From Ophelia neglecta (taxonomy: Eukaryota): 64,000 bases of DNA. Below the pieces are notes generated by a model, which saw only the letters and a list, made by a program, of their open reading frames with translations, was not told the DNA's origin and did no database searches. The DNA lies in assembly GCA_965285935.1 (NCBI GenBank), contig OZ260661.1, forward strand, positions 93,248,001 to 93,312,000. Direction: 5' to 3'. Made by a program: the position numbers and the translations under genes. Positions 4,108 to 62,507 of the stretch are shown piece after piece. Within the stretch, counting starts at the first letter, position 1; every line of letters starts with the position of its first letter.

Positions 4108-4170
4108 ATGGACAGTAACTTGGATTTCTCGCCCTTTCGGACAAAAAACCTTGGATACAAACCTCAAACG
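4108..4170 (+). CDS. prickle: Prickle-family gene, probable first coding exon (MDSNLDFSPFRTKNLGYKPQT)
   Basis: ATG in gtcATGG context, 21 open codons, then ACG|GTAAGA donor at 4171 in phase 0, matching the phase-0 acceptor at 5336/5337. Sits in a CpG-rich region just downstream of a CRE palindrome. An in-frame ATG also exists at 4048. Confidence 0.72.
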
Positions 4171-5336
4171 GTAAGATGTCGATACTGTCTAAAGTTTACG
4201 AAAAATCGAAGAAGTTTTGATGGGGTTGAAGCCGACATTTACACATGTAAAGTTTCAAAAGTTGACGGCGTTTTTCGGAGAGTAAGCCATGTTCTTTCAT
4301 GTGGAACTGGTATGAATAGTTGTACTCCAACTGTCTATATAAACACCCTTGAAGGCGACCGTATTTCTAACTTGTTTGTTAAGATGGCTGATGGGCAATA
4401 TTTGGTGGACTTCGGGTCTCTGTTTGAGACACACATGTCTATTTAAAACAAGTCCATATTACAACATTGGATTGAGAATCTGAAGTTTCGACAGAAGGTT
4501 AATGGTAACCTATTAAACCATGTGAACACGAAACTCAGCAACGCTTCTTCAACTTCGACCTACCTACATTTTAATACTTCTCCTGGCGCACTGAATCTAG
4601 GCTGTTACAGTAGTATTTTTAAACACTGGCTGATCTTTAAGTTTCCGAAAAGGAAAAAGAGGGGGCAGGGGGGGGTCACCAACATGGTGGATTGTCAGTG
4701 GCAGTCTCCTGTCAGAGGTGGCACTGAGGCCTGGGTCTATCGAGGGCACGGAGGGCTAAGCCCCCAGACCCAACTTTTATCCCCCCCCCCCTTGGGCAAC
4801 CTCATTTATAGGGCTGTTAAAAGGTGACTGTAGGTAGAGAAGCAGTCATGGCAAATACAAAATACGGATTTTTCATCCAGTCGAATAAACAAACTCATTA
4901 AACTGGCTCACTAAACTGACTGTTAGTTAGTGACTTAGTGACACCAGATTGAAATATTTTTGCTGTTATATTAACTAGGATTTATACCATGGTTTAAGTG
5001 TATCCAAATCATAAAAATCAAAATATATATGACTTTTAAAGGTTTTATAAGGTGCTGTTTACCATTTTGTATCAATATGTACCTTATAACAATATGGCTT
5101 GTATCTAAATAACTGATACAGATGTGTAGATATTTATTGATACAATCGCTTGGACATTATGATAAGGTTTATTATTTAACTTGGCTTGAACTGTGTTTAC
5201 TTGTTGTAAAGACATAATCGTGTGGGATGATATTGGTAGGTACGGCAGGCATCAAGAGCTATAATCATACATACAGTCAACCCTGTGGCGCCACACAAAC
5301 ACTGTAATAAACTTAAACTATCATCTTTAATTTCAG

Positions 5337-5425
5337 AGTCCTTTACTCGGTAGTCCTTTAGACAGGGGAAGACCTTGTCTTCAGTGCAGAGAGAGGTGTC
5401 CAGGATTTACACCACATTTTTGGAG
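5337..5425 (+). CDS. prickle: Prickle-family exon 2, first half of the N-terminal Cys/His module (SPLLGSPLDRGRPCLQCRERCPGFTPHFWR)
   Basis: Acceptor tcatctttaatttcag|, donor AG|GTAAGA at 5426 (phase 2). DRGRPCxxCRExCPGFxxHxWR matches the N-terminal module of PRICKLE3/Testin/LMCD1 proteins as I recall it. Not in the ORF track because it is short. Confidence 0.93.
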
Positions 5426-19700: not shown

Positions 19701-22700
19701 TGGCTATCTGATGCTTTCTCTACTGAATGTTGATAAGCTATGATTGCTGTTCCATTGAATGTCTTAGAAACCAAGCATCCAACACCCAAAAGACACTAGT
19801 TAGTCAAGAGGCCCAAGTCAGTCCTAAACACCCCTTTCATAGAAACTTTAATGGGTGATAACAGCACAAAGGTTGGCAGACCATAAGTTAGTGTTGTCTG
19901 GTATTTTGATAGATCCTGCCCAGATATCCTGCGAGTTATGGCCCTAGTTTTTGAGTTATTGCGGCCTGTTAATAATGCAGAGCCCTGGCGACTTGGATTT
20001 CACCGTGGGTGTGAGGGGCTGCGGGTCCATTCTGTTAGGTTAGCTATGTAACCACTGATCCTGTGATATAGGATGCTCATTTTTGGGTAATAGGATGTTC
20101 ATGTTAGTGTAATCACTTCAAAATGGTTTAAACCTTGCTATAACAATATACCATATTACCTAGTCTAGCCATTATCCTGACTTCATGACATATGCTGGTA
20201 TCATTTAAATTTCATCCTATGTAGTGTTGACAGTCAAATTATGAAGTAAAAACCACGTAAGCACGTATTATAGACAGTGTATTCTGGCATAAGAGGTTAT
20301 CAACAAAGTGAATTGTCTACTCCTAATCATTTATAAGACTCATGTCAACAGTGGTTTTTGCTATCGTCAAACTGTCTGCCAAACTGTCAGCGCTTGCAAT
20401 ACCTTTTAATGCTTGTGGAAATAGGAGCTGGCGTTAGGGTACAGGGCTCCATAGTGTACGGTAGGTATTAAACGGCTGGCTGCTTTATCAATGAGTCTCG
20501 TTCAGCTGATACAAGTTATAAATGTACCTCAAGTGTTGGGAACTTTCCAGAGAAAGTTGGCAGCAGGGACTTGAACGGTAATTCTTTAACAAAGTATAGG
20601 TGCCAATCATTTATTGCAGGTGGCTTCGATTTTTATGTTATCTTTACAGCACGGTTGTCACAACTTTGTTTTCCGAGACATTTATGCAGCTTCTTTTGCA
20701 GGTAAAACATTGAATATATGTTTACTGTTTTTAATAAAAGATTTGTCAATTTAAGAGTATGGTGTCTGATTGTAGGAGTTGTGGCCCTCTGGGACCAAAC
20801 AACCTTGAGGTCCTCCTTTAAAGTCACCCAGCTGGAGTTCTAGGAAAGTTCCCTGTAATCTCTCCCCATATGGTAAGTGCCCCCAGGGGTGACTCTATCC
20901 ACCAACAAGGACCACACAATGCTTAGTTACTGATGTCACCACCTCCATTTTGTTCCTAGAATGTTGATAACCATGAAAATTACAGCTGGGGGTGCTTTGA
21001 CCTAACTTCAAAGTGCCGACTTTGGAGAGTTTCCTGTTGAGCTGCAATTGTGCTGCAAAGGCATCAAGGGCAGATGCTTTACCCCATCGGCATTTATTGA
21101 CCCCTGGGGCATCAGACTAAACAATTTACAGCTTTATTTTATTAATACCCCATGCCCTTCAATGAGTTGTCCAGGCAATCACTGCCTACCGAGGTGCCGG
21201 CTCCCCACAATTATGCGAGAGTGGGTTTTAATCGTTCACTGCCAGGTGCACTGTTTTTGATTGTCGGTGCTTTCCTGGAGAGTTTAGGTATTTTGGCAGG
21301 GACTTCCCTTCTATAATATTCAGTTGCTTCTCCATAGTTTACCCAGGTGTTATTCTAAGTTGCAGGTTTTGTTTTTATGCCTCAAACTTTCTGGCTGTTT
21401 AACAGGATATCATTGCTAGCCATCAGAGTTAAGCAGGACTTAATACTGCCATCAAATACAGAAATACAGAAAGTTCCAGGGTATCCTCCATGGGTTTTGG
21501 GTTTAGCAGCTGAGATGGCATGATCTCTCAGAGCCATTGCCCAGCATCAAGGTGAGCATGCTTGTTTCTACCTAGTTGTTCTCTGTTTTCTCTGCCAGCC
21601 GTCTGTTTTCTGCGGCATACTTTGCAGGTTTGTCAGTGACATAGCTGCTCCAGGTTCTTGCCCGTCCTGCCGAGTCACCGGGCTGGTAATTAGCGGCAGT
21701 GATGGCTCTACCAGAGCTCCCGGTGAGAGTAGCTACCAGCTAGTTGTTGCCACTATACTCCTGGAGCTGGTTTTGTGTTTGTGATTGCCTCCTGGCAGAG
21801 GTTCCGACACACTACTCAAGGTGTGTCATTCCTGGTATGCTATTTTACCTTCTCATTACCTTGTTAAACATACAGCCCAGCCATTTTTATTGCCAATTTC
21901 AGGACCAGACACAGAGAGACTTAAGACTGCAGTTAGACAGACGTAACCAAATGATGTTTTGCCAAGAGTGAAGGTATATGTGGTTATTTTTAATACTGCT
22001 TTGTGTTCTAACTTACTTTTTACCATCCTTGACAGCCACTATACATACAGGCTGGGAAAGTTATGATAATCATAACAGGTTCGCTAGTTTTGAAAAGTGT
22101 TTGTGGGGGATAAATTTGTCTCTGCAAGTTGCTATGTCAACTTTTATCACAGAAGGAGTGGCCCAACTGTCAGTGACTTGACACTCACCATATTGTAGGA
22201 TGTTCTGAAAGAGTGCCCGAGATCTCTGCTGGAGATAGGAGGAGCCCTGTAATCACATCCACTAGACCATTTGACCTCCCTGACCCCGATTATACCCAGT
22301 ATTGTCAGGGGGAAATGGGAGGCTTTTGTTGGAGAAATGGTGTCTACCTGGGAAAGGTGGTGGTTATCATAAACATCTCCTAGTGATGATTCTTTACTTT
22401 AACTAAGTAGTCAGTTTAAAGAGACTTTTGGTTTGACCTCAATAAATCACCAACATCGCCAAGCTTATGTTTCATCGAAAGGAATCAACATGCGAGTGAA
22501 CTAGGGATAAAACTGGGGCAACAAGCAGTGCTGCCACTTCTGCCATACCTAGGTCTGATGTTGGACATACAGACTGACATTGGGAGAGGTCAGTAAAAGT
22601 CCCCTCGTGATGCAAGGAGGTCCTCCTATTACATGTACACCCACATATATTTGGGTTTAGGAGGACATTTTATGAGTGCAGGGGCAGTACTGATGCCAGT

Positions 22701-23139: not shown

Positions 23140-24150
23140 GTTAGTTTCTAGATCTGTCTTCGTCTAACTGCAGGTACTAGATTCAGGGCCGAGTGTGCCA
23201 CAGTCTACCTGGAGCGAGATTCAGGGCTAGAGGGGTCTTGGTCTAACTCGAGGACGTTTCAGGGATAGATCTGTCCTCATCTACCTTGTTACTGTGTAAC
23301 TGTGGGTACCAGTTTCAGGGTAAGATTTAACTGTAGGTACTATATGTTTCAGGGCTAGATCAGCCCCAGTTTTACTGCATGTAGCTTCAGTCTAAATCAG
23401 CCCCTGGTTTAACTGGCAATAGTTTCAGGGCTACTTGTGCATCTTCTTAGTTAACTGTAGAGAGTTTCAGGGCTAGATCTGCCCGAATCTTACAGCCATT
23501 AGTTTCAGGGCTAGATAAGCCCCTGTTCTAAGTGGAGGTAGTTTCAGGGTTAGATCAGCCCCTAGTGGTAGTTTGAGGGCTAGATCAGCCCCTAGAGGTA
23601 GTTTCAGGGCTAGATCAGCTCCTAGCCTAACTGGAGGTAGTTTCAGGGCTAGATCAGCCCCTAGTGGTAGTTTCAGGGCTAGATCAGCCCCTAGAAGTTG
23701 TTTCAGGGCTAGATCAGCCCCTAGCATAACTGGAGGTATTTTCAGGGCTAGATCAGCCCCTAGCCTAACTGGAGGTAGTTTCAGGGCTAGATCAGCCCCT
23801 AGCATAACTGGAGGTAGTTTCAGGGCTAGACCAGCCCCTAGCCTAACTGGAGGTAGTTTCAGGGCTAGATCAGCCCCTAGCATAACTGGAGGTAGTTTCA
23901 GGGCTAGATCAGCCCCTAGCCTAACTGGAGGTAGTTTCAGGGCTAGATCAGCCCCTAGAAGTTGTTTCAGGGCTAGATCAGCCCCTAGCCTAACTGGAGG
24001 TAGTTTCAGGGCTAGATCAGCCCCTAGAGGTAGTTTCAGGGCTGGATCAGCCCCTAGCCTAACTGGAGGTAGTTTCAGGGCTAGATCAGCCCCTAGAAGT
24101 TGTTTCAGGGCTGGATCAGCCCCTGGCCTAACTGGAGGTAGTTTCAGGGA
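23140..24150 (+). repeat. Minisatellite of mixed 39-bp and 30-bp units (GTAGTTTCAGGGCTAGATCAGCCCCTAG[CCTAACTGG]AG)
   Basis: Near-identical units from about 23540 to 24150 and degenerate units back to about 23140; produces the repetitive ORFs on both strands. Confidence 0.95.
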
Positions 24151-30560: not shown

Positions 30561-30649
30561 ATGTACCCAGTGTCTTCTAGGAGAAAGTTAGATGCATAGA
30601 AAGGTTGATAATTGAAGGAATCTGTACTAAAAGTAATTTGCACCACAGA

Positions 30650-40100: not shown

Positions 40101-40724
40101 CTAAATCAAGAGTTATGACCATGTTAAAAAGGCCCGTTGGACCTTAATTACAGAAGGTACTGCCGGAATTTGAAAAATCTTCATTGTTTTGGCTAAAATT
40201 AAATTTTGCATGCCACATTTGATAAAAATGTTATGGACCGTTTCAGACCCATGATACTGGGCACTTCTGGTGGGGGCACTGGCGGTGAGGAGCGAATTGG
40301 GAGAAAAGATCAATTCCGCTGTGGTTGACTTGACAGATGGGGATGATCGAAAGCTATCAGAGAAGTCATTGGCTGATAACCATCAGCATATCCTGAGATT
40401 CAAGCTGATGTAGGGGATTCAAGCATCTAGGGATGGATAAACAAGAAAAATTATTGGCAAGTTCCAATCTCAACAAGGGCCCATCAACAATAGACCGTGA
40501 GTCATAAGATTGGTGCGCGATCACTGCCAACGATCATTTCTGAGGGTAATTTAATTGTTGTGGAGACAATACTGGCCACAATGGCTGTCGATTCTGTCGC
40601 AGTGAAGGCATTTGACAGGCTGGGCGCTGACTAAACAGTCCAATTCGAAAGATTGGATTTCTGCCATTGTTTGATTAGACCTTGTTAAGGAATGACATCG
40701 AATGCTACTCTGCCCGTCTGCTGC

Positions 40725-40732
40725 CACTTCCG
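40725..40732 (-). promoter_or_regulatory. ETS-type motif (CGGAAGTG on the minus strand) upstream of the candidate exon at 40829
   Basis: CACTTCCG on the + strand in a CpG-enriched patch; single motif match only. Confidence 0.3.
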
Positions 40733-40828
40733 CTAACTATTTGGATAGTTTTAATCACTCACTCAGAAAGGAAGGACACTAGGATAACTTGACTAACCGC
40801 AACCGTTTTTAGCAAATTTTTTGGCACA

Positions 40829-40923
40829 ATGCGAGAAGAAGTCAATTCCGATCCGTCCCCGGACTGTTGTGGTAAAACCGAGGATTCCGGCGATGGCGGT
40901 GAAGATGCTTTCGAGGAGTGCGG
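40829..40923 (+). CDS. prickle: Candidate alternative first coding exon, acidic N-terminus (MREEVNSDPSPDCCGKTEDSGDGGEDAFEECG)
   Basis: acaATG with in-frame TGA upstream (40790-40792); 31 codons + GG|GTAATT (phase 2), in frame with exon 59684. Ten CpG in 95 nt inside a CpG-poor intron; ETS-like CACTTCCG about 100 nt upstream. Confidence 0.6.
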
Positions 40924-43900
40924 GTAATTGTCTTGATTACGTGTGTAATTATATCTTGTCTGGTGCCAGGATTGCATGATCATGTTTTTGATTTCCTAAG
41001 TTTTGTGTTTGCTGGCTTCCACCAGCTTTGATACAATGATTGATCGGAGTCTTAATGCACTCCTAGAAATGAAAAAAACATCAATTTCTCCTGTCATTCC
41101 GTGTTTTCTTTGAACACAATAATTAGGTGGGTTCTGTTGGTAGTAATTATATTTTGCTGTTGCTAGTAATTATATTTTGCCTAATTATATTTGTCTCTGA
41201 CTATATTTTGCCTGCTCAGAACAGGTGCATTGATCTGTCTAGAATGCACTCTAGTGGTAATTTCCACCGTTCTCTAGGCTCAGTTCAGGAAGCCACCAAG
41301 TGCCTTAGTTGTTGACGTTTCCTCCGAAAACTGTGATAATCCAACCGGCAGATGCTTGAGAAGGCAAAAATATCAGAAAAGCCCGAGATAAGAATACATT
41401 GGTTAGGTATCAGCCCCATTGAGCAGGAATCTTAAAATGCTCTTATTGCATAATACCATCCAATCTACTTTGGTCATATAAAACTTTGTTTATCAATAGG
41501 ATGCTGTTATCATTGGTCAAACAGTGGGTCTGTGATAGAGTGGTCTTATTGTACTAAGAGGCAATGCCTTGTGAATTCCGGGCCTTCTAGGCCGAGCAGG
41601 GCCCATATCTCAGGCTGTATCTTATAATTGACAGCTAGATTTAATGTTATTGGACCTTTGCTGTTTACTTTGATAAATTTAGGGTGTGTAGATATATACC
41701 AAGCATTGACAGGGACAGGTGAAGATTCAGGTGGATGTAGAATACATATACCTGTAGATGTTTGTGTCTGCTATATTTTGTCTTTGAATTCTGGAAGGGT
41801 AAGACTTTTATATTTCTTTAATGTGTGTGTTTCTTTAACGTATGTGTTTTTATTATCATTTTGACAGTATTTTTGGTACAATATTCCTTGAGGTATATGT
41901 GATACAATATTCCTTGTATGTTGATAATGTAGATATTTTCAGTTTGGTGCCATGATTAATTTGATGGTGTTTCAGGAATGTAGTATGGGCAAGTTATCCA
42001 TGAAGTTATAAATTTCTGTATGTAATTTTCCTTGTTAATTACGGGTGGTTATAATTGCCTGCCATATGGTGTGTCTGACAGGTTCAGGGGTATGACCAGT
42101 GGTCAATTGGCCCGTCTCAGCACCCTATTGTCTTACCCCTGACATTGTACCGCCCATGTTTAATGGCACTAGGTCTGTAGCCGGTTCCCACTCTACCGGT
42201 ATGACAGAGGTTATTAATGGACATCATTATGGTTGCCTCGTGATTATTATGGCCTTTTAACCTAGGCACATGAGTGCCCTGAAACAGTAGTTACTGTGGA
42301 ATTATTTCATTTTAATAGTTTAATGATTTAATTGATGTTCATTATCAGTCAGTTAAAGACAATTGGCTGCCAGGTATACAATGAGATTCACCAGTGTGTT
42401 TGTAATGGGCCCAGTTAGCTAATGACCATGTGTTTAAACCGATGTCACAATAGACCAAGTTGTCAATTCAGGCTGCAGTCGGACCCTGTAGTCAGGCTGC
42501 TGACCGGTACTGTTTAACACGTTTATCTGGAGATTATGAATGTGAACATCTGTGCCCTGGGCTAAGCATACAAACTTGACGGGATGGACAGAAGCTAAAA
42601 TGTCCAAATCCCACTGGCAGCAGAAGAAGAGGTCAGTTTGTTTTGGAAATTCTGCCTTGACTGACGCCATTTGTAGATGCTGTGTCTAACTGAGACAAAG
42701 ATAATTCTAGAAGTCATCTTTGTATGATTTGATTATGTATACTAGCTGTTAGCGATCATACAAGTTGTAATAGTTTGTGATGGAATATAAGGATAAGCTT
42801 TACACATATCATCAGTTCATCAGCGTCTTTCAGGTAATGTGTATACTTGTATGTTTATTCCGTGGGCCTACTCCCGGAGATATCCCCTAACACTCTCCAT
42901 TGATGGGCTGGCTTCCTTCCTCATTCACCGTCTAAGGTTCCTCTAACTCAAACATTACCAAACATTGTAATTCCAGGGTTCTGCTATTTACTGAGTATCT
43001 GCAAGCTGACAAAGTTGCTTTAGAAATTGAACAGGTTTTGGTTAGATTCAAGTTACAGTTATATCCTTGGCATTGTAGATCCACCTGGTGAGAGACACAG
43101 TCATGAACAAGTTACCCTCCATGTTGTATTACTACATTTACCATAATTGAGAACCATGAACCTGCTCACCGCATTCCCCAGGTGGATTTGATACATACAA
43201 GTAAATAACAAGGGGGGTTTCTCACCAAATGTCTGGCCACCCTCAGTTTTATACACCTAGTAAGCCAGGCTGCTAATTCCATTGAGGACTGGATGATATC
43301 TCAGTAAAGTACTAGTGCTTCTTTTTAAATACTTGGGAATTGTAACTTTTTTGGCCATTAAGTCTATTTTCCCAGGCATTAAGGAAGGTGTGTGATCACA
43401 GTTCTGACCCTTCAATTGTGATCACCTGTTTTATGTTCTGCTCTGATCTTAGGTTTATTTTCACCAAACCTGTTTTACGGTACAGACAGATTTTACAAGT
43501 ATATGTGGGTCTCCATCTTTCCTTTTTAGCTACAGAGGTCTCACCCAGAATTTTAGTCTTATATCCTAATTGTTTTGAGGGTTTATATGGATATGTAACT
43601 ACAGCTTGATTTTAAATTTGAAAACTGATGTTAAGCATGGAATTCTCACAATATATTCCTTGCTACTTTTTTCTTGGTAGTTTATGGGTACATTTGGAGA
43701 ATGTCTGGAAAGTAATAAACTCCAACGCAGGAAGCAGGAAGAAGTGTTGCTGCTAGTGGGTCATGATTTGTGCCAGGTTGAGCTCGGAATGTTTCCCATA
43801 ATTCTCTCATTGGTAGCTGTTCATTTAGCACAATCCCTGCACGTGCCTTGTGATGGCAAAATCTGTTTGAGCGATGGCAGAGCCTGGTTTAACACGCTCG

Positions 43901-45260: not shown

Positions 45261-47068
45261 ATGTTGATGGGGCACTAGTTTTCTCAGTAGGGACATACTG
45301 CACAGATGTGGTGAAGTGATACTTCTGATGGACTAGACACACGCTCCTTCCGCCAGTCACCACTTGGTGCAGACGACACTAGCCAGAAAACTTGTGCAAC
45401 CACCACTTTATACAAGCTCCTTATCTGTTTGTCATCAGTTTAGCTTGCTAGGTGGGAACTTCGGTATGTCATGAGGTGAGTCTTTCAAAACTATTCCTGG
45501 ATTTGCCATCCGATCTGCCAGGATAATCTTCTAGGCGTTCAGGATAAAAGTGGGAACTACAACATGAGTATCGGTTGACTGCACATCACCCAGCAGACAA
45601 CAATCTGAGAAAACTAGAAGGCTTTGTCATATGGATAGAATCAGAATCTATTTATTCTACTCTCATGCTCTTGCATGTGTTTCACATTGCTTGATATGCC
45701 TGGAAAAAGTTCTAAATGTTTCTGAGTGATCGTTTAGGGAGATACCTGGGACTGGTTTTTGTTTTAGTTGCGTGCGATACCTCTGGCCGGATACCGCTGC
45801 TTTGTAGACCGTGGTCTCGGTAGTCCCCAAGACGGCAGAATAGAGCCGTCCACCGCAGAAAATAAACACTAAACTTCTTTGCATAAGAATCATGTGTATT
45901 TACACAAGCATTGAGCAGAGTAGAGGTGTGCTGATGATAGCTGAATAGGCGCTGATGAATTCCGAATGCACTGGCAATGTCACGAAATGATGGAGAATTG
46001 GGCTCTCAGTTTGTGCTGGCATGCTATTAGATTGGCTTTGTGTAACTAAGGAAGTTCCTGTCCCAACATTGTGACTGGCAGTTATGAAGCAAAAGAACCA
46101 AGATCTATTCTGTGCATGTCGGTAGCCAAATAGCCGAGTTTTCCTTGTGATTTTTGTCAGTGCTATGACTCACATTGTGAGAAGGATGGCTTGGGTGGGC
46201 TAAGGATGTTTCTGTGGGTGGCACGGCAGCCCGCTGACAGTAGCATCTGCTAGGGTTTGTTCTGTACATACAGCCATATAAAAATGCTTAATTGGTGAAT
46301 TACTAATGTGGAATAAAGACAGGTTGCCTTACGCTGTTCAATCTCCTTTAACTTTGTATGCATGTGGGGCTAGGCTGCAGCCACAAGGTCAGTCCCTTAG
46401 AGCTACAAATGAGTATAGCGTCCTCTAGGGGTACATACACAATGGACATATCAAAGAGGTAAATCCCTTATAGAAATCAGCAGCAGTCATCCTGGGTCTT
46501 GGCTCTCCAGAGTTCATCGTCTGCTGACCGTCTTCTGGGCTGAGCTGCATACCAAGCTCCTCACGAGACAAACATGTTTCACTGGCTGCGGGCACAAGGC
46601 TTGGGGTAATTAAATTTCTTGTGGTGCCGATGTAGGCCCGACTTTATTGATCGACACTTGTGACTATTAGGGTATTGAGGGCCCCAATCAGCTTTATGTT
46701 CACCGCTGGAATGCATGGCGGTGCACACTGACGATTGCCTACTGATTGTGCTGGGCTGTCGGGCCGTGCTGCGCATTGTGGCTGCTCCCTGTAGATAGAT
46801 TGCTTCCTGCAGTCGGCAGCGACTGGCTTGACAAGGGATTAACAGCCCACAGAGCGCCAATCGGATTATCAGCTGACTGGCTCCTAGAAGACATTTCTAT
46901 CAGTGGCTTTGCTCCTGTAAGGAGATTGGAGGAGGTGTGAACTGGACATTGCTTCGCAGACCAACGATGGCTTGTACCAGGCTCAGGAATCTGCCTGGCA
47001 TGCTACCAGAACCTGTTGATTAGGATACATTCATGTACATAGAGGTGTGAAGTTGTCAAACAACCACC

Positions 47069-47172
47069 ATGGAGTTACAGGAATCACCAGTGGAGTATCC
47101 CATGCCATCAAAGTCTGGTATGTTAGACCCTCATGGTAGGAGAAAGCTGAAAAAGCTAAGGAAAACTAAAAG
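47069..47172 (+). CDS. prickle: Candidate alternative first coding exon, polybasic N-terminus (MELQESPVEYPMPSKSGMLDPHGRRKLKKLRKTKR)
   Basis: Near-ideal Kozak ccaccATGG, in-frame TGA at 47048-47050, 34 codons + AG|GTATGA (phase 2), in frame with exon 59684. CpG-enriched stretch upstream at about 46560-46980. Confidence 0.62.
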
Positions 47173-50100
47173 GTATGAATTTCCTCTGTTGAGTGGCAGC
47201 TTAATATTATTTTTAGATAATTGAAAAATTCCTGTCTAGTACAAGTAGGAACCCAAATCAGTGTTAGCTCCTGTGAGTCTGTTCCTAAACTACTCATATT
47301 AAAGTTGACATTTCACTGACTTCAAGTTCAGTTATCTGGAGTTAAAACTGGCACATAAGCCATGGTTAAAATAATGTTTTGTAAGTCGAGGCAAAAAAGA
47401 TCCAATGCAGTCTATAGATCAAGCTCATAGGGGTCTAACCCGATCACAGATCGGTTTCCACGGTTTTACCGAGTAAAAGTTTTCAGTTTTTCTTGGCCGA
47501 GATTCAAGTGCTTTTGGAATAAGACCTAGACAGGTTTGCCACCAGCGACAGGAAGGCAAATCACACCTGACGGAGCAGGAGTTTACTTCTCTCTCTAAGA
47601 CAAATACACAAATGTGGGAGTGGATGGCTGCGGCAACCTGGGCCTAGCCACCGGTTAGAGTACGGTTAGTGTACGAGGCCTGGGAGATTATGTGGTCAAA
47701 TAAAACTGGCTCTGTTGTGGGTGCTGGCAGCAATATTGAGGGTTTCAGGTATTAGTAATCAGGCCAGACTGGTTAAGAAGGTCGCACGGGGTCAGAACTG
47801 GCCTGGTCCTTAGATCTCAATGGCCAGTCTGTTAGACCCAGTTTGTTAACTGCAAGGCTGGAGATAAAACCTGTCAGTTAGTGACTGTAATGTATGAACA
47901 AATGGATGCATATCCAATTTGTTGGGCATTAAGGGGCAAGTTAAAACTGCATCTTAACTGCATTGATGAGTGGTGATGCTGTTTTGGCAGGTGTCTCTCA
48001 TCCTGAAGCCAGCAATGGGGGCTCTAATGGAGCTTTGGATATCAGAATGGTGCAAATCTCCATGTATAGGCGCACTCAGTGCCCACTAATGAGGAATTCC
48101 CTTGCCCAGATAGCAACCCACCAGGGAGAGCATGATGGCAGAAAACTTCTGCCAGCTTTGGACGGGATCAAACAGACAATTTGCTGGCAGCGAGATATGA
48201 TCTGCTCCGCTCTTGAGGAGACAAAGCTTGTGGCCCGGATTGGTAATTTCTGTCATGAAGAGCGGCCAACGAGGGACTGAAGCTCAACTGACAGGTTCAT
48301 GCATAACATAGCAGGCCCTGTGCCGTCGTTTTACCATCCGTCACCGTCAGGCCCGATTGAATTGCATTGCATCAACTAATAGAATCACTATTCATTCCGC
48401 TCTCAAAATCCTGGTCTCCACACTGAATTTGTCAGGTCATTCCTAGCCATGCTCTGGCATTGCTAGGAACATGAGTTCCTGAACGGCGGGATCCTAACCC
48501 TAATTTCTATAGTGACTGATGAGCTCTCACCGCAAATCCAATTCCTTTTGATTTGGAGAGTGATTGTGTTTGATTTTTGCTAATGCAGAGTAATCCGTGA
48601 CTGTAGTGTCCAGAATACACTGGCTGTATAATGAATTGGAGACAAACTGCCATCAACATCTATCATGTGACCATCCTCATTGAATGGCAATGGATGTGGC
48701 TGTATTTGCTATGATAATTGCTACAATGTTTTAAGAGTCGTGTATACACTTCCATGTAGCTTTATCATGGCATTGGTATATGATTGGACTAAGGTTAATA
48801 AGTCTGCTTGTAAACAATCAGACCGTTGTCACACTTAGGACAATCAAGTTAACAACCTTTGTAGCTACGTACATGGTGTCATCATATCTACGGTCTCCTG
48901 GCACCTCCTATCTGTATCAGCAGAATTCAGTTCGTGTCAACACAGGCTTCTCAGCAGTTACTGTAGTACTGTCTTCATTGAGATTCCAGTCCTTCCAGTC
49001 TCCTGGAGACGTCTCCTGGAGACGCCCAGGACAGCTCAGTGCTGTAATTGTTGGTCTTGTTACAATATGCAGGACATCCACCATCGGGCAGGGCTAATGC
49101 TGAGCAATTCTTTGGATCCCTCTTTGATAAATGTTAATGTGATTCATATATCTAGCCACATTGCAGTCATTTGTTGCAAACTAACCTGGCTACAGTTCCT
49201 AGCCTTGGGAAGAATACCATAGCAACCTGCTGAGTTATTAGGCAGAAAAATGTATGATTAGTCCTAAAGAATGTGAGAGATCATCTACCTAAGCCGGATC
49301 TGACCATTGGTCAGTACTTTAATGGCCATTGTAGTCATTTATCAGCTTGGAACATGACATTTGGTTCTGCCATCAATTTGTTATAGCCATTCTATTTGGC
49401 AATTCTTCCACAGATATGGTTTTATGAGATATTTCCTCAGATTTGGCCTGTGACAATGTTGTTTGAGTCATCACAAGAGACCAAATGAGCACTACATTTG
49501 TCCTCTTGTATTCTCAGCAAAAGTTGCTTACTTGTCAAAGTGAATTTGTAAATTAGTTCTGAATGAGCCCTCCCCCCCCCCCCCCCAAGTCTTCTTGTGT
49601 CCCCTGTCTTCCTGTGTGAGGACTTGGTCACCCTTAGGAGGTGTGCTGTGTTGAGTACCCCCTGGTGTAACCAAACTGTGAGGCCTGCAGGGCCTTACAG
49701 GGCCCTGGAGAGTCCTACCTGTCAGCCTCTTTACACCTCACACTTCCTAGTGTAATCCCTGTTGTCAGCTGTTGGCTAACACTGCACACTTGCTGAGCTC
49801 CATCTCATGTGGGCTGATCCCCATTCCACTGTATTGCTCCCATCTCAGAAATGAATGCTGACAGTTTGCTGAAATTAAACGCATTTCATCCTTGTGTTTT
49901 CACTGGGTTTCAACGCCTCTAGTGTAATAAACCCTAAGGGAAATTCTTATATTCAGTTTTCAAATATTGACTTCCGTTGGCAAAGGAAAGCCAATTCAGG
50001 GTGGTTAAAGGTAGCTTATTATGACAGCTTGTCTTGGTTGACTCGCTCTAATACAGCTCCAGAGGAGGTGCTGCTCATCCTCACACACTGGGCTGCTTGG

Positions 50101-52154
50101 CTTTCCTCCAACTGATGGAGTTTGTTTTGGGTCAATAAATGAGCACGGAGATGCAGCAGGGAAGTTAATGCAAGAATGAGAGTGTTCAAATGATGTGCCA
50201 CCAGAGCTGCTATGGAGAATTTCATGTTAGAAATGAGCATTGAAGGTTAAAGATACATTTTATGTTTTAACACTTTCAGTGCAGTCGGAAAATTGTTAAA
50301 TACGCATATAATCAGCCCTGGCAGAAATCCCGGTTTGTTCCAGTAAAGTGTTTTCTGGTTTCACAAATCCCAGAGCTACTCTGTAATCTGATTTCAAGCT
50401 TTTACATTTATCAAATGATTGAATTTTTTCGTGCGGTTCGACGCAGAATTCTCTCACCAACAAAATCCATTTCTTTGGTGCAGACCGGATCTGTTGTAGT
50501 GGTCATGGAGAAGTGAACGAGCTGAATCCAGCAAAAGACTGCTTTTAGCCTAGCGTTGGCGCTGTGATATGCATGTAAATACAAAAATGGGGAAAAAACT
50601 GGTGCAATTTATAAAACAATCCAGCAAAAGCACTTGTATAGACTGTAAAGAAGTATTGCTTGCATGTTTAGATTGAATTTACAAATATTTATTAGACAAC
50701 TGTAGCCGAATTGTAAGTTAAGTAAGTGCCAATCTCATACGTGAGGGCCAACTGCCTTGGATTGTGGGGCTTTACTGTCTTGTATTAGAGTACCATTATA
50801 AATGGCCCTCATGGTACTGAACATGTTAAATTTAATACTGAATCTTTCTGTCTTAAGAAGGAATCTATAATCTTTCAGTTTCTTGATATACACATGGACA
50901 TGCACATTTTGTACATTGAAAGTGCTTGAAACAGTTTACTCTCTGAATTTTTTCATGAGCAAGAGATAGAGAAGGCTCCTTGGAATGAGGCCAGTAGAAT
51001 TGCAGGACAGGCATTACTTTATTTTTACACTGTGTATTAGTGGATAAATCAGTATTGATTGATGTCTGAGTGATTGACCAGTTTGGAGGAGATGTATGGC
51101 AGGTGTACTGTAGCTGATGGCCTTCTCCTGTACAGTGGGAGGTATTATTTTATGATCGTGCCTCTGATCATCCGTCTAATGGCAGTGTTTGGCCACTCAC
51201 AGTTCATAGCTCATTTCACCTGAATTCCTTCACCATAACCTCATAACACTCAATGGCGCAGAGGAAAAGAGTTTTTTCCTGCCAATTTTCATACAAGTTC
51301 AATAGACCCAGGCCTGGTTGGGCAGACATAATACAAATCACAGACCGGCTTTCACCAAATTGATTTGTGTATTTGTTATTAGGCAGTTTAATGGGGGCAA
51401 TTTCTCAAACTTTTCACTTTGACCCTTGACCAAATGAATAAAATTAGCCGCTTCTGGATACTGTGGCTGCTGGCTAGTCCATCAAGGCTTCATTTGTAGT
51501 CATCTGGCTGGAGAAATCTCCATTACCTTCTTCAGTAATCACCCAAACTAATATAGCATGCTCCATTGCTTGCTAACTGCAGGCTGACGATGGTGTGACG
51601 ATGAAGCTAGCAGCCCTGACGTGTTGAGTCCAGCATGCCCAGCGTGCTGAGTCCACCATGCCCAGCCCATTGCCCAGGCCATTGCCCGGCCATGGCTGGT
51701 CTTATTTTGTACTGATCAAATTCCCAGCTATACTCACTAAAGTTTGGGCTGCTGCACACTTCGCCTGATCATCGGTTGGAATATTCATATTCAGCAAAAT
51801 AATATGAATGAAAGTGTTGATAATAATACAAAATAAAAGAGTAAAACTACTGTAAACTGCTGTTAACAGTGAAAAGGAAAAAAGAAAATTATGAGGTTGA
51901 AAAAATAACCCACTGTAAGTGAATAACTAGTGTTATATAGGGCACTCCATTTAGAGAGTCATATTTTATTAATTTGTCAACAAAATGGCCCTGTAGCAAA
52001 TAGATGCTCTGGTTTTCTATACATCAGGTGTTTTATTGCAGTATAAATGCCCTCTTATCATAATGGAATCCTAATGAGAACCCTTCCTAACACATCATGC
52101 CATCCTACCATCCTCACCTGCTATCACAAGCTAATGCCGCGGTGGAAAATAGCA

Positions 52155-52217
52155 AAATCCGTCTGATTGTCTCTGAAATCCTTCTGATTGTCTCTGAAAT
52201 CCGTCTGATTGTCTCTG
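52155..52217 (+). repeat. 21-bp tandem repeat x3 (AAATCCGTCTGATTGTCTCTG)
   Basis: Three units with one substitution. Confidence 0.9.
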
Positions 52218-55200
52218 ACGCCTAACATGTGAGATTTTGATCAATCATGTTCTAATAAAGTGCCCTATCAGAACTGTGTTCAATGCAGGACTTACCAGTC
52301 ATGATAGATCCAGCGAACCGGTAGACAGAATTGAGGGAAATTCATGTCGAATTTGAAGCCCCTATCAATGAATGGTCCCTTCTATCCTGCTGTCTTTCTT
52401 TGTCTTTTAATGGTGTTTTTATTCCTGATAAAAACAATCAATATTAATATATTTTTATTGAGCATGAAAGCCTTACAGAGCTACTGATCCTGTTGATATG
52501 ACATGCTCGTATTAAGGCCTATTGTACAGTGATTGAAGAGAATAGAAATGTGATAAATGTGAAATATCTAGTTGGCACTTAAAAGAGGGATATCAGCCAA
52601 TATTCCATCTAGCTAATCACCTATTTAATTGAATTAAGAAAGGTTTTTTTGATGGGTAATGAATACAGGAATTGATGAGGACTGCCAGCCCACTATTATA
52701 GGTCCAAATGATGATCAGGGACTGAGTGATGGGAGGTTACATCACAATTGTTCAGGGGCACCCGGCAATGTGGGGTTCATATCTTATTTATGTCAGTTAA
52801 AATGAGCACATGGCTGCTAATACGTAGATAGACTTGCAGGCTGTCCTGCTATTTTGTCAATTTTGGTATTTTCTGCACTTAACTCGAAATAAACTTCTCT
52901 GTGAAGTGGGGATCAGCTGACTTGAATTCTGGTAAATGTGCCCATAAACAATGAACAAGTGACATGGTCCCTGAAATTACTCCCGGCTTAAATTGGTCTC
53001 ATATTGTTGTTAGACCAGCAGAGAGCAAGTGGTAGAGAATATTACTGTTTTATGTCGCTGCCCTCTGGCATACAAACGCCAAGTTAGTTGGGCATGCTCG
53101 GTACTTTTTATGTTTTTGTTTATCGGCACTCTGAATTTGTCCCGTGGGAGTCTGCACCCCTATCTGGGACCTAATAGGAACCATCACACAGTACTGAAAT
53201 CTGCCGAGGGGCTTCCAGTCAACAGTTGGCTGATCAAAAGGAAGTTGGAGAGCAGTGTTTCAGGACTGAAGCTCACCTGTCTACATAGGTAATATATCAG
53301 GGATTGCTGACTGGGCCAGTCTGGGTGGAGTGGATTGGAGCATTCCTGTAAAGCTGTGTGTGTCAGACTCAGGTAGGCCGGGAGCAGTGGATGGGGGGAC
53401 TGGGGGCTGACGGCTCACCTCTCTACAGACAGGCAGAGCAGGCAAGTTATCTCAGGTAGGAAGCAGTGGATGGGGGAGGGGGGGGGGGCAATATAAAGGG
53501 CAAGCTCAGGGGCTGATTAGCCTGATCAGGGCACAGGTGTGGCAGAGTAAACATTGGCATTGACATCCTAAAATGTCAGGATAATCTGTGGCACCCCACG
53601 TTCTATCTGAGAGGAGATAGAAGGAAGACCTTTCCAAAGAACACATTGTCCTGGGGTGGAAAAGTATGGCTTGTCCTAGTATCAGGCTGGGAGGGGTGAA
53701 CTGTACATGGAGAAATGTATTGACACTGGAGTAATATACTTATCCTATCAGCTCAATTATCTGGAAAGCAAAACTGATACTAGTAGGCTATGTTGCTGTA
53801 GTCAGAAGACAAGGAGGCATGCCTTCATATAGGGTGATATCATATTGAAGAAATTAGAATCTTTAGAAACGCACTAAGAAAGATCTGGGTGTTAGAGCTA
53901 TAGTATTTAATCAATTTTTTGCTGAATTTAAAAAAGAAAACAAGACACCCCCCCCCTTCACCCACTCCCATTTTACCAGACAAACACATGGAAGTGTTGT
54001 CCCCACATCTGCCAGTCAGTTCTGTTGACCTGGCTTGTGCACAGCTGACCCCAGTTTCCTGCCTTTGCCCTGAAGCCCAGGTATGTCCTTACTCCTGATT
54101 GTGTTAACAGCCCAGCACAGGCTACCCAGTCACAATCAATACAAATCAGTTCACCTTCAGACTGGCTTACCATCGTCTCAGGCAGATTAACCAACAAAAG
54201 TGTGCTGGCTTGTACTTTACCTTGACTCAAGCCTTGTCTTAAGTGGAATAGGAACTGAAAGAATTGGCAGCAGTGTGCCCACTCCGTTTGGAGCATGTTG
54301 GCCTACGGTAATGTGTAACTAAACAAAGAGGCTAATTACGTTTACCAAGCCTTACAGACTGCAGGACTTGTCTTGAAAGATGATGAATTAAGGGCTAGAA
54401 GGGTTGGGTAAATATTCAACACCAAGGATATCCTTCCTCTAAGTGGTAGAAAGTTGCGACACATTCTTGACTTTGGTGCAGTTTTTGCACACGTCAAACT
54501 CTTGCAGACTCTCCATGCTTTCAGCAACACATTAGCCAGGTTTTTCCGTGTTCACCCACATGCCTCTTTTGAATGGCTCCAGTGTAATATGAAAAGGATT
54601 TTTTGCAAATTCTAATGCATCTTGCAAAAAATTGCCTGTAAGCGCGGTATTTACAAAGAGTACATTGACAAGCTTGTTGTTAGCTTGGGTCTCAGTAAAC
54701 TGCTCAGCAGCCGAGTGGGACAGTATACAAGGGTTAAAATAGACACAAACGAGGCTGCAAGGACCTCGATTGTTCAGCTGTAGTCCAAGGGTGGGTATTC
54801 AAAAAATGCTTTAAATTCAATCTTGGTTCTTAACATCAAATATTAGCTAGACACTTAAACTTTTATTTAGGAAGGCAAGGAGGTCATCCAATTTCAGGGG
54901 ACCCTTGTACATCCACAACTGAGAAGTTTACAGGGTCTGGTCTTACCCCAGTAATATGGCAAATGATAACGGACTTTTGACATTTCAATCTAGGCAGACT
55001 ATCTCTGCACATCACCAATAACAGCATCCCTAGGATTCCATTGAGTTTCCTCGACTAACATATGGAGCTGCAGGGTTTTTTGTGTTGATATAACTGTAAT
55101 ATCAAGCTGGGATCATCTGTGTGGTCAGAGATCATTGAGCCACAATTGCCGAAATACACATTTCCTGGTGGTCACCTATGTACCAATGTTTTCAGTCTTG

Positions 55201-55763: not shown

Positions 55764-58597
55764 CTGCAGAATGAAAACATACACACCTTAAAATGTGGAT
55801 AGCAAGTGAGTTTCAATTGTAATGTGTGTGAAAAAGTTGAATTATTAGGGAATATTAATTTAAACAAAGTAATATTGATATTGCTATTCTGCAATATTTC
55901 CTTTGCAGAGTTGAATCAGAATTGCACCCTGAGTGTGTGAGAAGTCTCCATTAGAAACATTAAAATGTCATCTCCATATCTCTCATATTGTTGGTCCCAC
56001 CCAACATGGGAAACTTATCCAAATGGTACATTTTTATTAATCTTTACTAGTGCCAATGCCTGTTTTGGATATTTATTTCTGCTGCTGCCCACTTTAGAGT
56101 GATTGGTATTTCTGTGGTGGCCCTCCGTGGAGTGATGGTGTCTTCAAGGAGACCCTGGCAGTCTCTAGTCCCTCGGTGACCCCATCCCCATAATCATGGA
56201 AGACTGAACGAGCACCCACAATTTGTACAGTGTCATCCCTGCTACAACATACTGACAACCAATCTATTAACTTACTCCTCCACTCACTAAATAATGGCAA
56301 ATAATGGCAGCAAGCAGATCTTACTGACTTGGGAAAGACTGAGCAATGACTGAGATAGAGCACGCATTAGAAGATTGTTTAGGATGAGTTTTTTCCTACT
56401 ATTTATCAAGTGCAGTCATGTTTAAGCAAAATGAACAGATGGTTTGATTGTGGGGGGATCTTTACTAGATTTTCTTACATTACAGAATAATAAACAGGAA
56501 TGATTCTTCTTTGATATCGACTGTTTTTCTGTTGTTTTCTCTGTGAGCTTTGCTGTGAAAATTCCAACAAGCCAAAATGCTATACAGAGTGTTTATTATG
56601 GATACCATTTCCATACAGTTATTGAATTCTATAAGGCAGTGTTGTCATTTTGGGTATTGTATTCTGAAGACACTTGTTAGTGGAGGCCTGCGGTCTTTCT
56701 CTGTCTTTCTGCCGTCTGTCTGCGCCTTCTCGGCACATCTCTGTCCCAGACTGACTGCTGGCAATCTGGCCTCAAGATGAAAGTGTGCCAAGGTGACCTT
56801 CACCAATTGATACCTTATTAATATGGACATAAAACAAAAGACTTTGCCTTAGGGCAGGGATAACAATCAACTCTACATGCTAACCTAGCACTTGCCTTCT
56901 GGCTAAAGACCTACAAAACTCATCTATCAATGATGTATTGTTGGGATGTAAATTACTGGTGAGACTTCTGCTGCATATGTATACCTACAGTATATATATT
57001 GTCTCCTTATAAGAAGGTAGCTGGAGCGACATATTTGGTGCCAAGGGCCGGGAGGGAGTGTTTGGGGGGGGGGGGGGGGAGGGAGGGAGGGTTGGAGGCG
57101 TGGATGATATCAATCAGAATTAAGTCTTATTTGTCTTCAGCTGTATAAGTTGATTTATATTTCATAACTTTTTAGTTTAGCCTTGGTTTTAAATGGCTGC
57201 TATGTCTACTCCGTTTCACTGGTGTCAACGCTATTGATTGAGTACCTAAGACCGAGGCTGGGGGGAGGGGCAGGCATGATGGATGGTTTATAGATGGGCT
57301 GACAACTTCCCCTCTGGTCAGGGAAAAGGTGAACAACAAAATGCCCATTATTCTCAATTTATGTATGTAAATCCTGCTATTTTCTTGTATTTAAAGCTTT
57401 TTATTATACATAAATGATTTATTGTGAAATAAGCTAGGAGGAAAAACAACAGAATACATGTAGTTAACAATATGATAAGATCATCAGTGAGTCTCTAATG
57501 TTGTAATCTATTGGGCCTAGATATTCACTTTTTTCACCGGACTGATGGCTTGGGTAGGCTGGAGTAATAACCTGATCCCCCAGGAGTATGCTCCCTGTCT
57601 TGGTCTTGTCTTCAAGACACACTCCACACTGCATAATAAATCTACCATCAGTCATTGTTTTCCTCCCTATGCAATTCTATTCTAATAAATGTCCTGAGGG
57701 GGGAGGCTGGTAAAGGAAAAATTGGATGACCTTGTGGTAGGATTTCAAAAGGCCCCCACCCCTCCTGGGTAATCATTTTCTGTAGGGAATGCTGAGGAAA
57801 ATCACAGTTGATGAATAATCCACAGCTCTTCAATCATTTTTGTCTCCACCAAGCTGGTTTGTGTTGCTTTCAGCTGAAGATATGATCTGGCCCACCCAAG
57901 AGGGACTAGCGTTTTTCTCTCCGCCATTGTCGATCTATCTGAGGTTTTCCTCCTCATTCCTCCATAATAATGCACCGATAATGACCCGTCTCCCGCCAGT
58001 CGAGAATTTCCTCAGACTGTTGATGGCCGTTTGTTTGATTGTTTAATCATACCAAAATGTCCCTGTCAGGCATTATACCCTTCTGAGAGGCTTTAAATGC
58101 TGCCAAACCACAATAAAACTAGTGAAAAGGTGTTTAATATAAGCTGCAGCGAAAGCATTTAACTGTTTTCAGACGATAATTGAGGGGCAAATTCTTACTT
58201 TGTTCTCTCTCGGGTTTTTTTGCCGTAGATGTTATTAAGGTGAAGAAAAAGTGCAGGTTCAGACCTCAGAGTGTGATGGGACTAATGGCAAAACACATAC
58301 CAAGTGCAAAATGTTTTAAAAACAGTTTATGAAAGGAGCACTTAACAGTTTTGTCCTACCCAGTATGATACACACAACACAGCGTTAACTTTCCTGTCTC
58401 TGTTTTCTTAAGGTTCATAAAAAGTTCCCCGTAAAATCCAATATTATTGGATAAGATCTACCAGCTACTGCCCCCATAGTAACATTAATGTTAGCTGTTA
58501 ATTAGAAAAATTCTCATTGGTGCTGCCCACTGTCACCTATACAATCTCACATGTCTAGCCCTGTTAGTTGAAAAGACATAATACAACTCGGAGCCCC

Positions 58598-58690
58598 TGA
58601 AGTGGACCCCTCCTCTGCTTATTTAGCTCTCTTTGGCCCCTGGTCAGAGACGTCAACCCTTGGAGAGAGAGAGGGGGGGGGTCCACTTCA
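58598..58690. mobile_element. Short palindromic MITE-like element, copy C
   Basis: TGAAGTGGACCCC...GGGGTCCACTTCA perfect 13-bp inverted repeat, same terminus as copy A. Confidence 0.6.
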
Positions 58691-59683: not shown

Positions 59684-59861
59684 AAAGATCTGTCGTAACT
59701 GTAAGTGTTCCCGTGAGTCACACGATGTGCCCACACCCGAGATGGATCGCAGCATGAATAAGTTGGTCCACGAGCTACAGAGGAACTCTACCTCGGATGA
59801 CGACAGTGGCTGTGCCCTGGAGGAGTACACCTGGGTACCTCCTGGACTCACCCCTGTACAG
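59684..59861 (+). CDS. prickle: Prickle-family exon 3, second half of the Cys/His module and start of the PET domain ([15 protein letters not shown]...[28 protein letters not shown])
   Basis: Acceptor ttcttccttttgtttccag| with phase-2 entry (AG|A = Arg, giving [11 protein letters not shown]); donor CAG|GTAAGT at 59862 (phase 0). [21 protein letters not shown] is a hallmark Prickle motif. Confidence 0.96.
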
Positions 59862-61874
59862 GTAAGTCACATATAACCTCTTACACCTTACACACCCCCA
59901 CTCCACCCCCTTTATAGGGAAATCAGAGAAAATAGTCTGCAACTCACTGAGGAGATCAGGTACATCTTTATACCCAGGTAGCCTGCTGAAAATCTTACAA
60001 TTGTTTATATTATATTGTTTGTCAAAAGATTTAAATAAAGCAAGAATCAGTGAAAACAAAGTTAAACAAAATTCATATTGCCACATGCTTTAACGATTGA
60101 TGTGCATTATCAGAAAAACAATCTGCATGTATTTGGGTGCAAAGTTATGATTGATTACCGAATGTTAGTTGATTTTCATCAATGCAAATCATATGGCTTA
60201 GACACAGCTTTTATCAGATATGACTCAACTATCCAGTGTCAGCCTCACTGAGTCAAATTGAAAAGAATGCAGAAAGTGGGGCTAACAAGATCACAGCAAA
60301 CGGCAACAATTATGATTTTAATGAATACCATTGAGAGGCCGGTGTAGTGGCTCGACTGGCTTGCCCGTCTTTTAAGGTCTTTTGTGTTGGTAGGAGACGG
60401 GGTCAGAGGTATAATAGGACAGGATTTCTAGGTCAGTTCAGGACAGGGCCAGACCTGACCGCCACTAGTTTTTGACTGACTGATGAAGTTGATCACATTA
60501 ATACATCTGATCCAGGCTGACCGCGGTTGTCAGGGTATCTTGCTAAGTGGAAACTTTTTAATCAGCTAAGATACACTGGGATTGTTAGTATTTTATTGTC
60601 AGCAACTCATTTCCATGTTCTCAAGTATTTAATCAATGACCACGACCAATATTGCAGTCTCCGGAAAGAAAATTAAATAATTCCATCCATTTCATTTGCA
60701 TACAACTTTTCAATTATGCCGCCATCGTCCGGTTTAATCACCAGAACGACACCCTTGTCGGAAGTCTCTAAAAGAGGAGGGGTGTTTAGGGAAGTGGCGT
60801 GCACGTTTTTGTTTCAAAGTTAAGGACACAATTACAGCGTTCTGGACGGCTGACATTCATCTCATAACTCCCGTGGAAATCCAACACATGTTTTAGGGTC
60901 AATTTCACTCTCTTTTATTCATAATCAGAGACCAAATGTGCCATAAAAGTCTGCTCCTTTGCATATTGAAGCTACCCCAGGGTGGATTCAGTACGGAAGC
61001 AATATTTAGATTAACTATCAGAAAAATACTGAAAGCAATATAGAGCGTAATAATTCCATTATGATAACACAATAAAATGCACAACACTCATAATCATTTT
61101 GGCAAAGTAGTGTGGCTATCATTATGCAGAAGAAGAATTAACCTTTTTCCTCTAATCAAATTACCAAATCTAATTTTATGTGAGCGGTTTACAGTCAGAG
61201 ATATTATGGATGCAAACATGCACTGCTTTGCCTTGAGGCTGGCTTGCAAGGCTGAGGCATCCTTATGCAGCCTTGTTTTGCCATTAGGCCAAAGCAGAAT
61301 AATGAGAAGCAATTTGCCGAAATGGGGCGGAATAAAGTAAATGGCACTCCAGAGAAATTATGATATTAGTCGAGTTAAAACTACGGCAAGCGGTGCAGAA
61401 ATAGCACCGGATAAATCTAGATAGGGATCACTTGTTTGCCGGAGAATGTAGAATATGCAATTATGCTTGAAGATTATTTTCTATTCACCTTGATCGGCCC
61501 AGAGGAGATGTTTTCATGGTGACAAAATACTGAAAATTGTCCATTTGTCACTTCATTTATGAGATTGCAGACGATTAAGTCCGCCTTGTAGATATTGTTG
61601 GCCTATGGTTAAATTAACATGGATTGGGTAGATTTCCATCTAACACAGCCTTCAGGTGTAATTTTATGATTTCTTTATTTCATCATTGCCGCTTAACTCG
61701 GCAGTTATTCCTTGATATATCATGCACTTTTGATGATTTGAATAAAAGTAACACCCTAAGGAAATTATGGCAGGTCCGAGTGTTCATTGATATTTCACAG
61801 TTAGTTATGATCAAACCTGATTTTTGAAGCTGTCTTAGGCCATTGTATCTCCTCTATAATTGGAACTTGACCTG

Positions 61875-62507
61875 ATGAGTAAGGATTGTGACAGTACAGA
61901 GGAGCAAACTGCAGGCAAAATGTTTGAGGAGGAGAAGAAAATCATGCACTTGAAAAACTTTAGGGTCTCAGTTGCTGTTAGGAGTCCCAGCCCACAAAGA
62001 AAGGCATTCCCTGCACGGGACAAACGTGAAAGGGGTGGATCTCCAATCATATGGGTGGATGGAGTGGAAAAGGGATCCTCACCCGGCAAGGACCAAGCTA
62101 GCATTGATGGCCAAACCACCCAACTGGAGGTAGCTTGTGCAGACAAGACTAAGAACTTTAAGAGCTGCCCTGATCTGCGTCCACGTTGTCTGGGTTCAAG
62201 GCCAGACCCCATGTTGGTGAGTCTGAGGCCAGTGGATCTGGCTCCTGTACCCAATAAGAGAGCCATCAAATCCAAGTCCTTGGAACGCAGCTTTAAATCC
62301 AGAGATCTTACTCAAGCAATAGAATCTGTGTTTGATACAAAGGAGGCAAGGTCTGATGAAGACTCGCTGCTTGGTTCACGAGATACCAGGGTGACACCTA
62401 ACAAGCCTAGCCTTCCACTTCATCCACTGAACAAGCGACTGCCAAGGTTCTCTATAGATAAATACTGTGTGAAAAAGCTGACTTTGTACCGACTCTCTAG
62501 GCTGCTG
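61875..62507 (+). CDS. Candidate alternative first coding exon of 211 codons (MSKDCDSTEEQ...KKLTLYRLSRLL), phase-0 donor
   Basis: Longest non-repeat ORF in the window, with protein-like charged, S/P-rich composition; in-frame TAA at 61857-61859; CTG|GTAAGT at 62508 in phase 0, the same phase as the exon-3 donor. The ORF reads as intron-like after the donor. Confidence 0.6.

Follow-up and report, generated by a model that had tools for sequence, protein, structure and literature searches.

A putative two-tier set of alternative ATG-bearing 5' exons in the prickle gene of Ophelia neglecta

In flies, planar polarity is oriented by one global cue or another depending on whether Prickle carries the Pk or the Sple N-terminus. 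The Drosophila prickle isoforms Pk, PkM and Sple have been attributed to alternative start sites or 5' exons (Gubb et al. 1999 as cited in PMC9634456), and the Sple isoform has been stated not to be conserved in vertebrates, the published view being that isoform logic of this type is absent outside insects (PMC4764577). The present analysis concerns the 5' part of the prickle gene of the lophotrochozoan Ophelia neglecta, contained in a 64,000-nucleotide stretch of DNA (the window; G000:C1:93248001-93312000 of a 762-Mb chromosome-level genome), in which an earlier note had proposed a bank of phase-matched alternative first exons that would place different N-termini on a shared core. It appears moderately likely, from sequence comparison, that this gene carries a two-tier set of alternative ATG-bearing 5' exons giving different N-termini, and the system is probably a variant of the fly Pk/Sple principle. 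As in the fly, mutually exclusive 5' exons with their own ATGs would be joined to shared PET/LIM exons in a gene of the same family, with one of the exons very short and another long, poorly conserved and disordered. Unlike the fly exons, which join upstream of an intact PET domain, three of the exons described here (L, S and C) are located within the intron by which PET is split, and their use would eliminate PET profile positions 1 to ~31 together with the Cys-rich module, and at least five variants would be possible, compared with three in the fly.

Several other described systems share parts of this arrangement. The 'delta-N' isoforms of p63/p73 and LEF1/TCF start at an intronic promoter, and their own short N-terminus replaces a functional module. 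The prickle locus resembles them in that an internal start within a large intron would replace an N-terminal module and leave the remainder of the protein in common, but the gene families are unrelated and the prickle system would comprise several such exons in two tiers. Protocadherin and UGT1A arrays consist of rows of variable first exons, paralogous to one another, that are spliced to common exons. A row of alternative first exons preceding common downstream exons is likewise seen here; however, the exons are mutually unrelated, as no pair of exon peptides was similar in an all-against-all blastp comparison (all pairwise E>0.7). Among vertebrate paralogues, PRICKLE3 keeps the Cys-rich module and PRICKLE1/2 start just before PET, and the canonical and polybasic routes proposed below would differ in the Cys-rich module in the same way. 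The N-termini of vertebrate PRICKLE1-4 differ from one another, and PRICKLE3 begins with its own N-terminal signal (review PMC11116189). Unlike vertebrates, which have four genes, O. neglecta has one prickle gene and would use exon choice instead.

The gene spans approximately 96 kb, of which the window holds the 5' part, and 80 kb downstream was also examined; the first 40 kb past the window end was appended and is numbered 64001-104000 (window-style coordinates). Exons were searched singly, and the reading frames across junctions were checked by a local script. The coordinates of the earlier note were all borne out by sequence and frame check, with the refinement that exon 3 ends at 59861, position 59862 being the G of the donor. 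Exon 3 matches PET profile positions 3-29 (Pfam PF06297), and PET is followed by three LIM domains, represented by a PF00412 match in the LIM1 exon and by two matched stretches in the last exon. Because PET is carried on exons 3-5, the LIM domains are matched and the protein terminates in CIIS, the gene is a complete prickle with a Cys-rich module, PET, three LIM domains and a CIIS (CaaX) tail. It is also the sole prickle of the genome, which has one further PET gene, on contig 7, of a type other than prickle. Exons 2 and 3 are arranged as in a Capitella gene model, and the closest named matches to exon 3 are annelid proteins (Owenia, Capitella), which score no higher than vertebrate Prickle3. 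A solved relative of PET was not found in the PDB.

The evidence for further exons comes from a 44-kb contig of a related species, which is collinear with window-style 45.9-92 kb via some twenty conserved blocks and encodes an exon 3 protein 95-98% identical to that of O. neglecta. Synonymous sites are saturated between the two species, with a proportion of differing synonymous sites (pS) of 0.68-0.84 and of nonsynonymous sites (pN) of 0.15-0.34 in the conserved exons, and whatever remains alignable must therefore be constrained. A phase-blind six-frame scan of the relative's contig identified exactly four coding-like blocks besides exon 3: a polybasic exon in intron 2, and L, S and C in intron 3. 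In each of the four, the ATG is kept, the GT donor occupies the same codon phase and the similarity stops at the donor. The similarity begins at the ATG and not at an upstream acceptor, and the upstream AGs are either unconserved or without a pyrimidine tract. The donor phases of all four exons fit the next constitutive exon, an agreement with a chance of ~(1/3)^4 = 0.012. On the conservation of ATG, frame and donor, the polybasic exon, L, S and C are functional coding sequence under purifying selection.

The polybasic exon, which the earlier note had put forward as an alternative start exon, has its counterpart at the collinear position of the relative (L013:1510-1617), with an identical ATG, a 6-nt in-frame indel and the same AG/GT phase-2 donor. 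Between the two species, pN is 0.25 and pS 0.68, and the ratio of nonsynonymous to synonymous substitution rates (dN/dS) is about 0.17. A weak Capitella match to this exon lacks the ATG, the basic tail and the donor, and was rejected.

Exon L, the 211-codon exon of the same proposal, is present with a phase-0 donor that fits exon 4 and is conserved in two other species. From stop to stop its frame measures 250 codons, more than any other non-repetitive frame of the window, and a frame of this length arose in 0/200 shuffles. A phmmer search of L against 1.8 billion representative sequences returned two matches, P0001 and P0002, both unannotated open reading frames (ORFs), and no annotated prickle or insect protein at E<=0.001. 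P0001, from a 1.3-kb contig of a third species, is 53% identical within the phmmer match (E 1e-47) and 52% identical when the full alignment is counted, and was the only match in a word search. P0002 lies on the relative's 44-kb contig with an exon 3 homologue 2 kb upstream, as in the window. The gtaagt donor is identically placed in all three species, and the similarity ends at the donor. Between three conserved islands (an N-terminal island, a middle island and a C-terminal helix motif) lie linkers that evolve fast and vary in length, and dN/dS is 0.48 against the nearer species. AlphaFold modelling of L gave a mean predicted local distance difference test score of 51, with predicted disorder except in helices 9-27 and 194-210, and the ESM Atlas contained no usable match.

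Exons S and C lie past the end of the window (Table 1) and add to the exons proposed earlier. All 7 differences between the S core and that of the relative are synonymous, and the donor is gag/gtaaga in O. neglecta and gag/gtaggt in the relative, in phase 0 in both. Exon C has 96 codons in the relative, where the start, a 20-residue motif and the aag/gta phase-0 donor are conserved. S contains the string KKRVTF, which resembles the RVxF phosphatase-1 docking motif, and a similar string, R-V-[ST]-x-A-V, is present near the start of L. A further conserved block in intron 3, block D, was considered as a fifth exon and ruled out, as each of the six frames gives a match and the putative donor has phase 1; it lies ~6 kb upstream of PET exon 4. 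No Pfam family matched L, C, the polybasic exon or a second, acidic mini-ORF in intron 2, and Rfam gave no match. The regions of L and of the polybasic and acidic mini-ORFs are each single copy in the genome, which rules out a repeat or transposon origin for all three.

Table 1. Features of the prickle locus of O. neglecta in window-style coordinates; a slash in a donor marks the exon-intron boundary.
Feature	Position	Strand	Description
CpG-island-like stretch	3301-4550	.	observed/expected CpG ratio (o/e) at least 0.85; around exon 1; presumed main promoter
Canonical exon 1	4108-4170	+	21 codons; phase-0 donor acg/gtaaga; sequence and frame check
Canonical exon 2	5337-5425	+	first half of Cys-rich module (testin / PRICKLE3-type); phase-2 donor gag/gtaaga
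Weak candidate	21520-21551	+	10 codons + AG/gtgagc; no support
CpG island	40501-41200	.	o/e 0.87-0.96, 99th percentile of locus; candidate internal promoter
Acidic mini-exon candidate	40829-40923	+	31 codons + GG; phase-2 donor cgg/gtaatt
Weak candidate	45471-45475	+	ATGAG/gtgagt; 1 codon; no support
Conserved non-coding blocks, intron 2	45860-45958, 46859-46897, 48135-48316, 48489-48670	.	blastn 69-85% identity, collinear
Conserved non-coding blocks, intron 2 (continued)	48923-48996, 51389-51568, 54308-54412, 57797-57865	.	blastn 69-85% identity, collinear
Polybasic ATG exon	47069-47172	+	34 codons + AG; phase-2 donor aag/gtatga, fits exon 3
Constitutive exon 3	59684-59861	+	entry phase 2, exit phase 0; second half of Cys-rich module and PET start
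Conserved non-coding module	60870-61382	.	0.5-1 kb upstream of L; blastn 73-74% identity over 116 + 266 nt
Exon L	61875-62507	+	211 codons; ATG start; phase-0 donor ctg/gtaagt, fits exon 4
Exon S	71493-71561 (L009:7493-7561; G000:C1:93319493-93319561)	+	23 codons; phase-0 donor; 7.5 kb past window
Exon C	83312-83947 (L010:9312-9947; G000:C1:93331312-93331947)	+	212 codons; phase-0 donor
Block D	89756-89815 (L011:5756-5815)	.	60 nt, 88% identical in two species; conserved non-coding
PET exon 4	95647-95760	+	phase-0 acceptor C1:93343647, 31.6 kb beyond window; PF06297 positions 33-69
PET exon 5	near 96.7 kb	+	PF06297 positions 69-102
LIM1 exon	~97.1 kb	+	PF00412 match
Large last exon	3' end of gene	+	LIM2-3 and long tail; 787-codon open frame ends CIIS, then stop

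The proposed mechanism is a combination of alternative promoter use and first-exon choice, which would place at least five N-termini on one LIM-plus-tail core. In the first tier (tier A), canonical exons 1 and 2, the polybasic exon and perhaps the acidic exon would be spliced to exon 3. Use of the polybasic or acidic exon would swap the first half of the Cys-rich zinc module for a Lys/Arg-rich or acidic peptide, and the choice within this tier would decide whether the Cys-rich module is whole, with PET intact. In the second tier (tier B), L, S and C would be spliced to PET exon 4, giving isoforms without the whole Cys-rich module and without the first ~30 PET positions, the first third of the domain. 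The intron that contains L, S and C interrupts PET between positions 29 and 33, and joining to an intact PET holds for tier A alone. The 'shared core' of the earlier note is thus common to all isoforms in its LIM-plus-tail part; the core as a whole differs between isoforms because the intron 3 exons remove the start of PET. We infer the partner exon of each donor, the presence of own promoters and an effect on polarity.

Several observations weigh against the two-tier arrangement. The tier B isoforms would truncate the PET domain, and to our knowledge a PET-truncated Prickle has no described precedent in prickle. A search for sequencing runs of the organism returned three DNA-like runs and no RNA, and of 333 matches in a search with exon 3, the 120 that were inspected are unspliced genomic ORFs running on into intron sequence. 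The polybasic exon, S and C have each been confirmed in one relative only, and in Owenia, Capitella and two further contigs the surroundings of exon 3 yielded no alternative exon, so the alternative-exon system may be confined to a single clade. S lacks a CpG island, and the donor of the acidic exon is weak (2.8 bits). In addition, the phase matching of mini-ORFs in general is at the chance level. With a simple donor matrix, the 54-kb intron 2 contains 5/5/5 candidates in the three phases of the + strand and 7/7/7 in those of the - strand that combine an ATG-initiated ORF of at least 60 nt with a donor, and the phase-matched class is also unenriched at other length cut-offs (for example, 18/33/22 per phase at a minimum of 5 nt). 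Phase-matched ATG mini-ORFs as a class, on which the earlier note had relied, therefore do not serve as evidence, being no more frequent than in the other phases and equally abundant on the opposite strand.

Although both stronger mini-ORFs of the earlier note, at 40829 and 47069, are present with phase-2 GT donors, the acidic one stands apart from its conserved polybasic counterpart. It sits within the strong CpG island of intron 2, upstream of the stretch covered by the relative's contig, and the case for it as an alternative start exon is only suggestive. A word search with the acidic ORF gave no candidate and is uninformative for a 44-residue query. The codon-usage log-likelihood places this ORF in the top 0.1% of open intronic windows; however, no weight was given to this measure, for which CpG content is a confounder and in which the genuine exon 2 has a negative score. 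Chance is the best reading of the two weak candidates, at 21520 and 45471, of which the latter falls ~0.4 kb short of the relative's contig; candidates as short as that at 21520 are numerous in every phase. The core idea of alternative phase-matched 5' exons with conservation of ATG, frame and donor in relatives is thus supported for the polybasic exon and the 211-codon exon, to which S and C can be added, and is unsupported for the candidates at 21520 and 45471.

Within the 104-kb locus, which is strongly CpG-depleted (mean o/e 0.31), strict CpG stretches (o/e of at least 0.85 and at least 10 CpGs) are present solely at 0.9-2.0, 3.3-4.55, 40.5-41.2 and 82.45-83.05 kb and downstream of the gene. 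The third of these is the only strong CpG island within intron 2, and the fourth is located 0.3-0.9 kb upstream of C. A weaker island (60451-61750; o/e of at least 0.7) is located upstream of L, and the CpG peaks of the relative are also upstream of L and C. No CpG island is present at the polybasic exon or at 21520. This pattern is suggestive, but not proof, of own promoters for the alternative exons. The non-coding module upstream of L is very strongly conserved, contains long identical TAAT-rich runs in the alignment and is a candidate promoter or developmental enhancer. The conserved blocks of intron 2 are regarded as non-coding because they match in several frames and on both strands. Two further CpG-like stretches flank the gene: one at 901-2050, located 2 kb ahead of exon 1, may correspond to a non-coding first exon on the upstream side, and one at window-style 101.8-103.5 kb (L012/L018), just past the prickle stop, may be the promoter of a neighbouring gene.

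Three other explanations of the conserved exons were weighed. The one that survives best is that L, S and C belong to one or more separate nested genes on the same strand, small-protein or long non-coding RNA-like, that never join exon 4. The junctions to exon 4 are predicted ones and such joining would cut PET; L has no detectable relatives among annotated prickle proteins in the 1.8 billion representative sequences; and ~3 kb of intron 3 before exon 4 extends beyond the relative's coverage and could hide further exons. However, L, S and C end at conserved donors, and each must therefore splice to something downstream, and from L to ~92 kb there is no other coding-like conserved block bearing an acceptor, the sole extra block, D, being non-coding. 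All three donors are moreover in phase 0, which is the phase of exon 4, and one shared downstream partner is the simplest reading. Nested genes are considered unlikely.

A slightly less probable explanation is that the conserved exons are internal, as cassettes or as exons trans-spliced to a leader, for example in an L-S-C chain or with the polybasic exon between exons 2 and 3. The phases are symmetric enough for this, S and C each have a phase-0 AG a few codons before the ATG, and an AG upstream of the polybasic exon would give a 120-nt in-frame cassette. These upstream AGs, however, either lack pyrimidine tracts or are in a phase that is unconserved in the relative, and conservation begins at the ATG; for S and C, where no acceptor is conserved, an internal position was ruled out. 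In L, an in-frame stop precedes the ATG by 5 codons with no usable AG in between, and a cassette within the zinc module would break the module. That everything but the canonical route consists of chance open frames and GTs in long introns is very improbable, since chance, although it agrees with the mini-ORF counts on both strands, is the best reading for 21520 and 45471 and is a live one for 40829, cannot explain the conserved ATG, frame, in-frame indels, donors and dN/dS well below 1 in four exons, nor the long open frame of L; for the polybasic exon, L, S and C, chance is already refuted. The two-tier set of alternative start exons remains the preferred reading.

Several features of the region and of related sequences lie outside this argument. 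In another species group (L022:6574-6750, P0064, P0067 and P0069), the exon 3 homologue possesses a degenerate second half of the Cys-rich module and an in-frame ATG just before the PET part. In that group the exon may function as a start exon, as does the first coding exon of vertebrate PRICKLE1/2. A minisatellite at 23346-24149 (period 39/69, ~22 copies) is non-coding and, on both strands, gives rise to the window's longest open frames, and two tandem copies of a 252-nt unit, 99% identical, occupy 30646-31155. Approximately 25 kb downstream of the gene, at L020:224-1790, three adjoining open frames of 178-190 codons resemble the remnant of a reverse-transcriptase-type retroelement.

A broader and speculative extension, to which a low probability is attached, is that N-terminal isoform switching is an old protostome (or bilaterian) device, in which L would be the counterpart of the Sple N-terminus and the intron 3 exons would encode PET-truncated variants coupling the core polarity machinery to different upstream cues. 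The fly Sple N-terminus, which seems to include the sequence Ser-Leu-Pro-Arg-x-Met-Lys-Pro, would in that respect be similar to the conserved middle motif of L in P0002. The short conserved motifs of the exons, namely the polybasic tail, the RVxF-like KKRVTF and the amphipathic C-terminal helix, are available for testing. The PET-truncating tier, if expressed, would represent a new kind of Prickle protein. The presence of at least four conserved alternative start exons in a single-copy lophotrochozoan prickle suggests that N-terminal diversification is recurrent, and perhaps ancient, in this family, and that vertebrates would have reached Prickle N-terminal diversity through paralogues instead.

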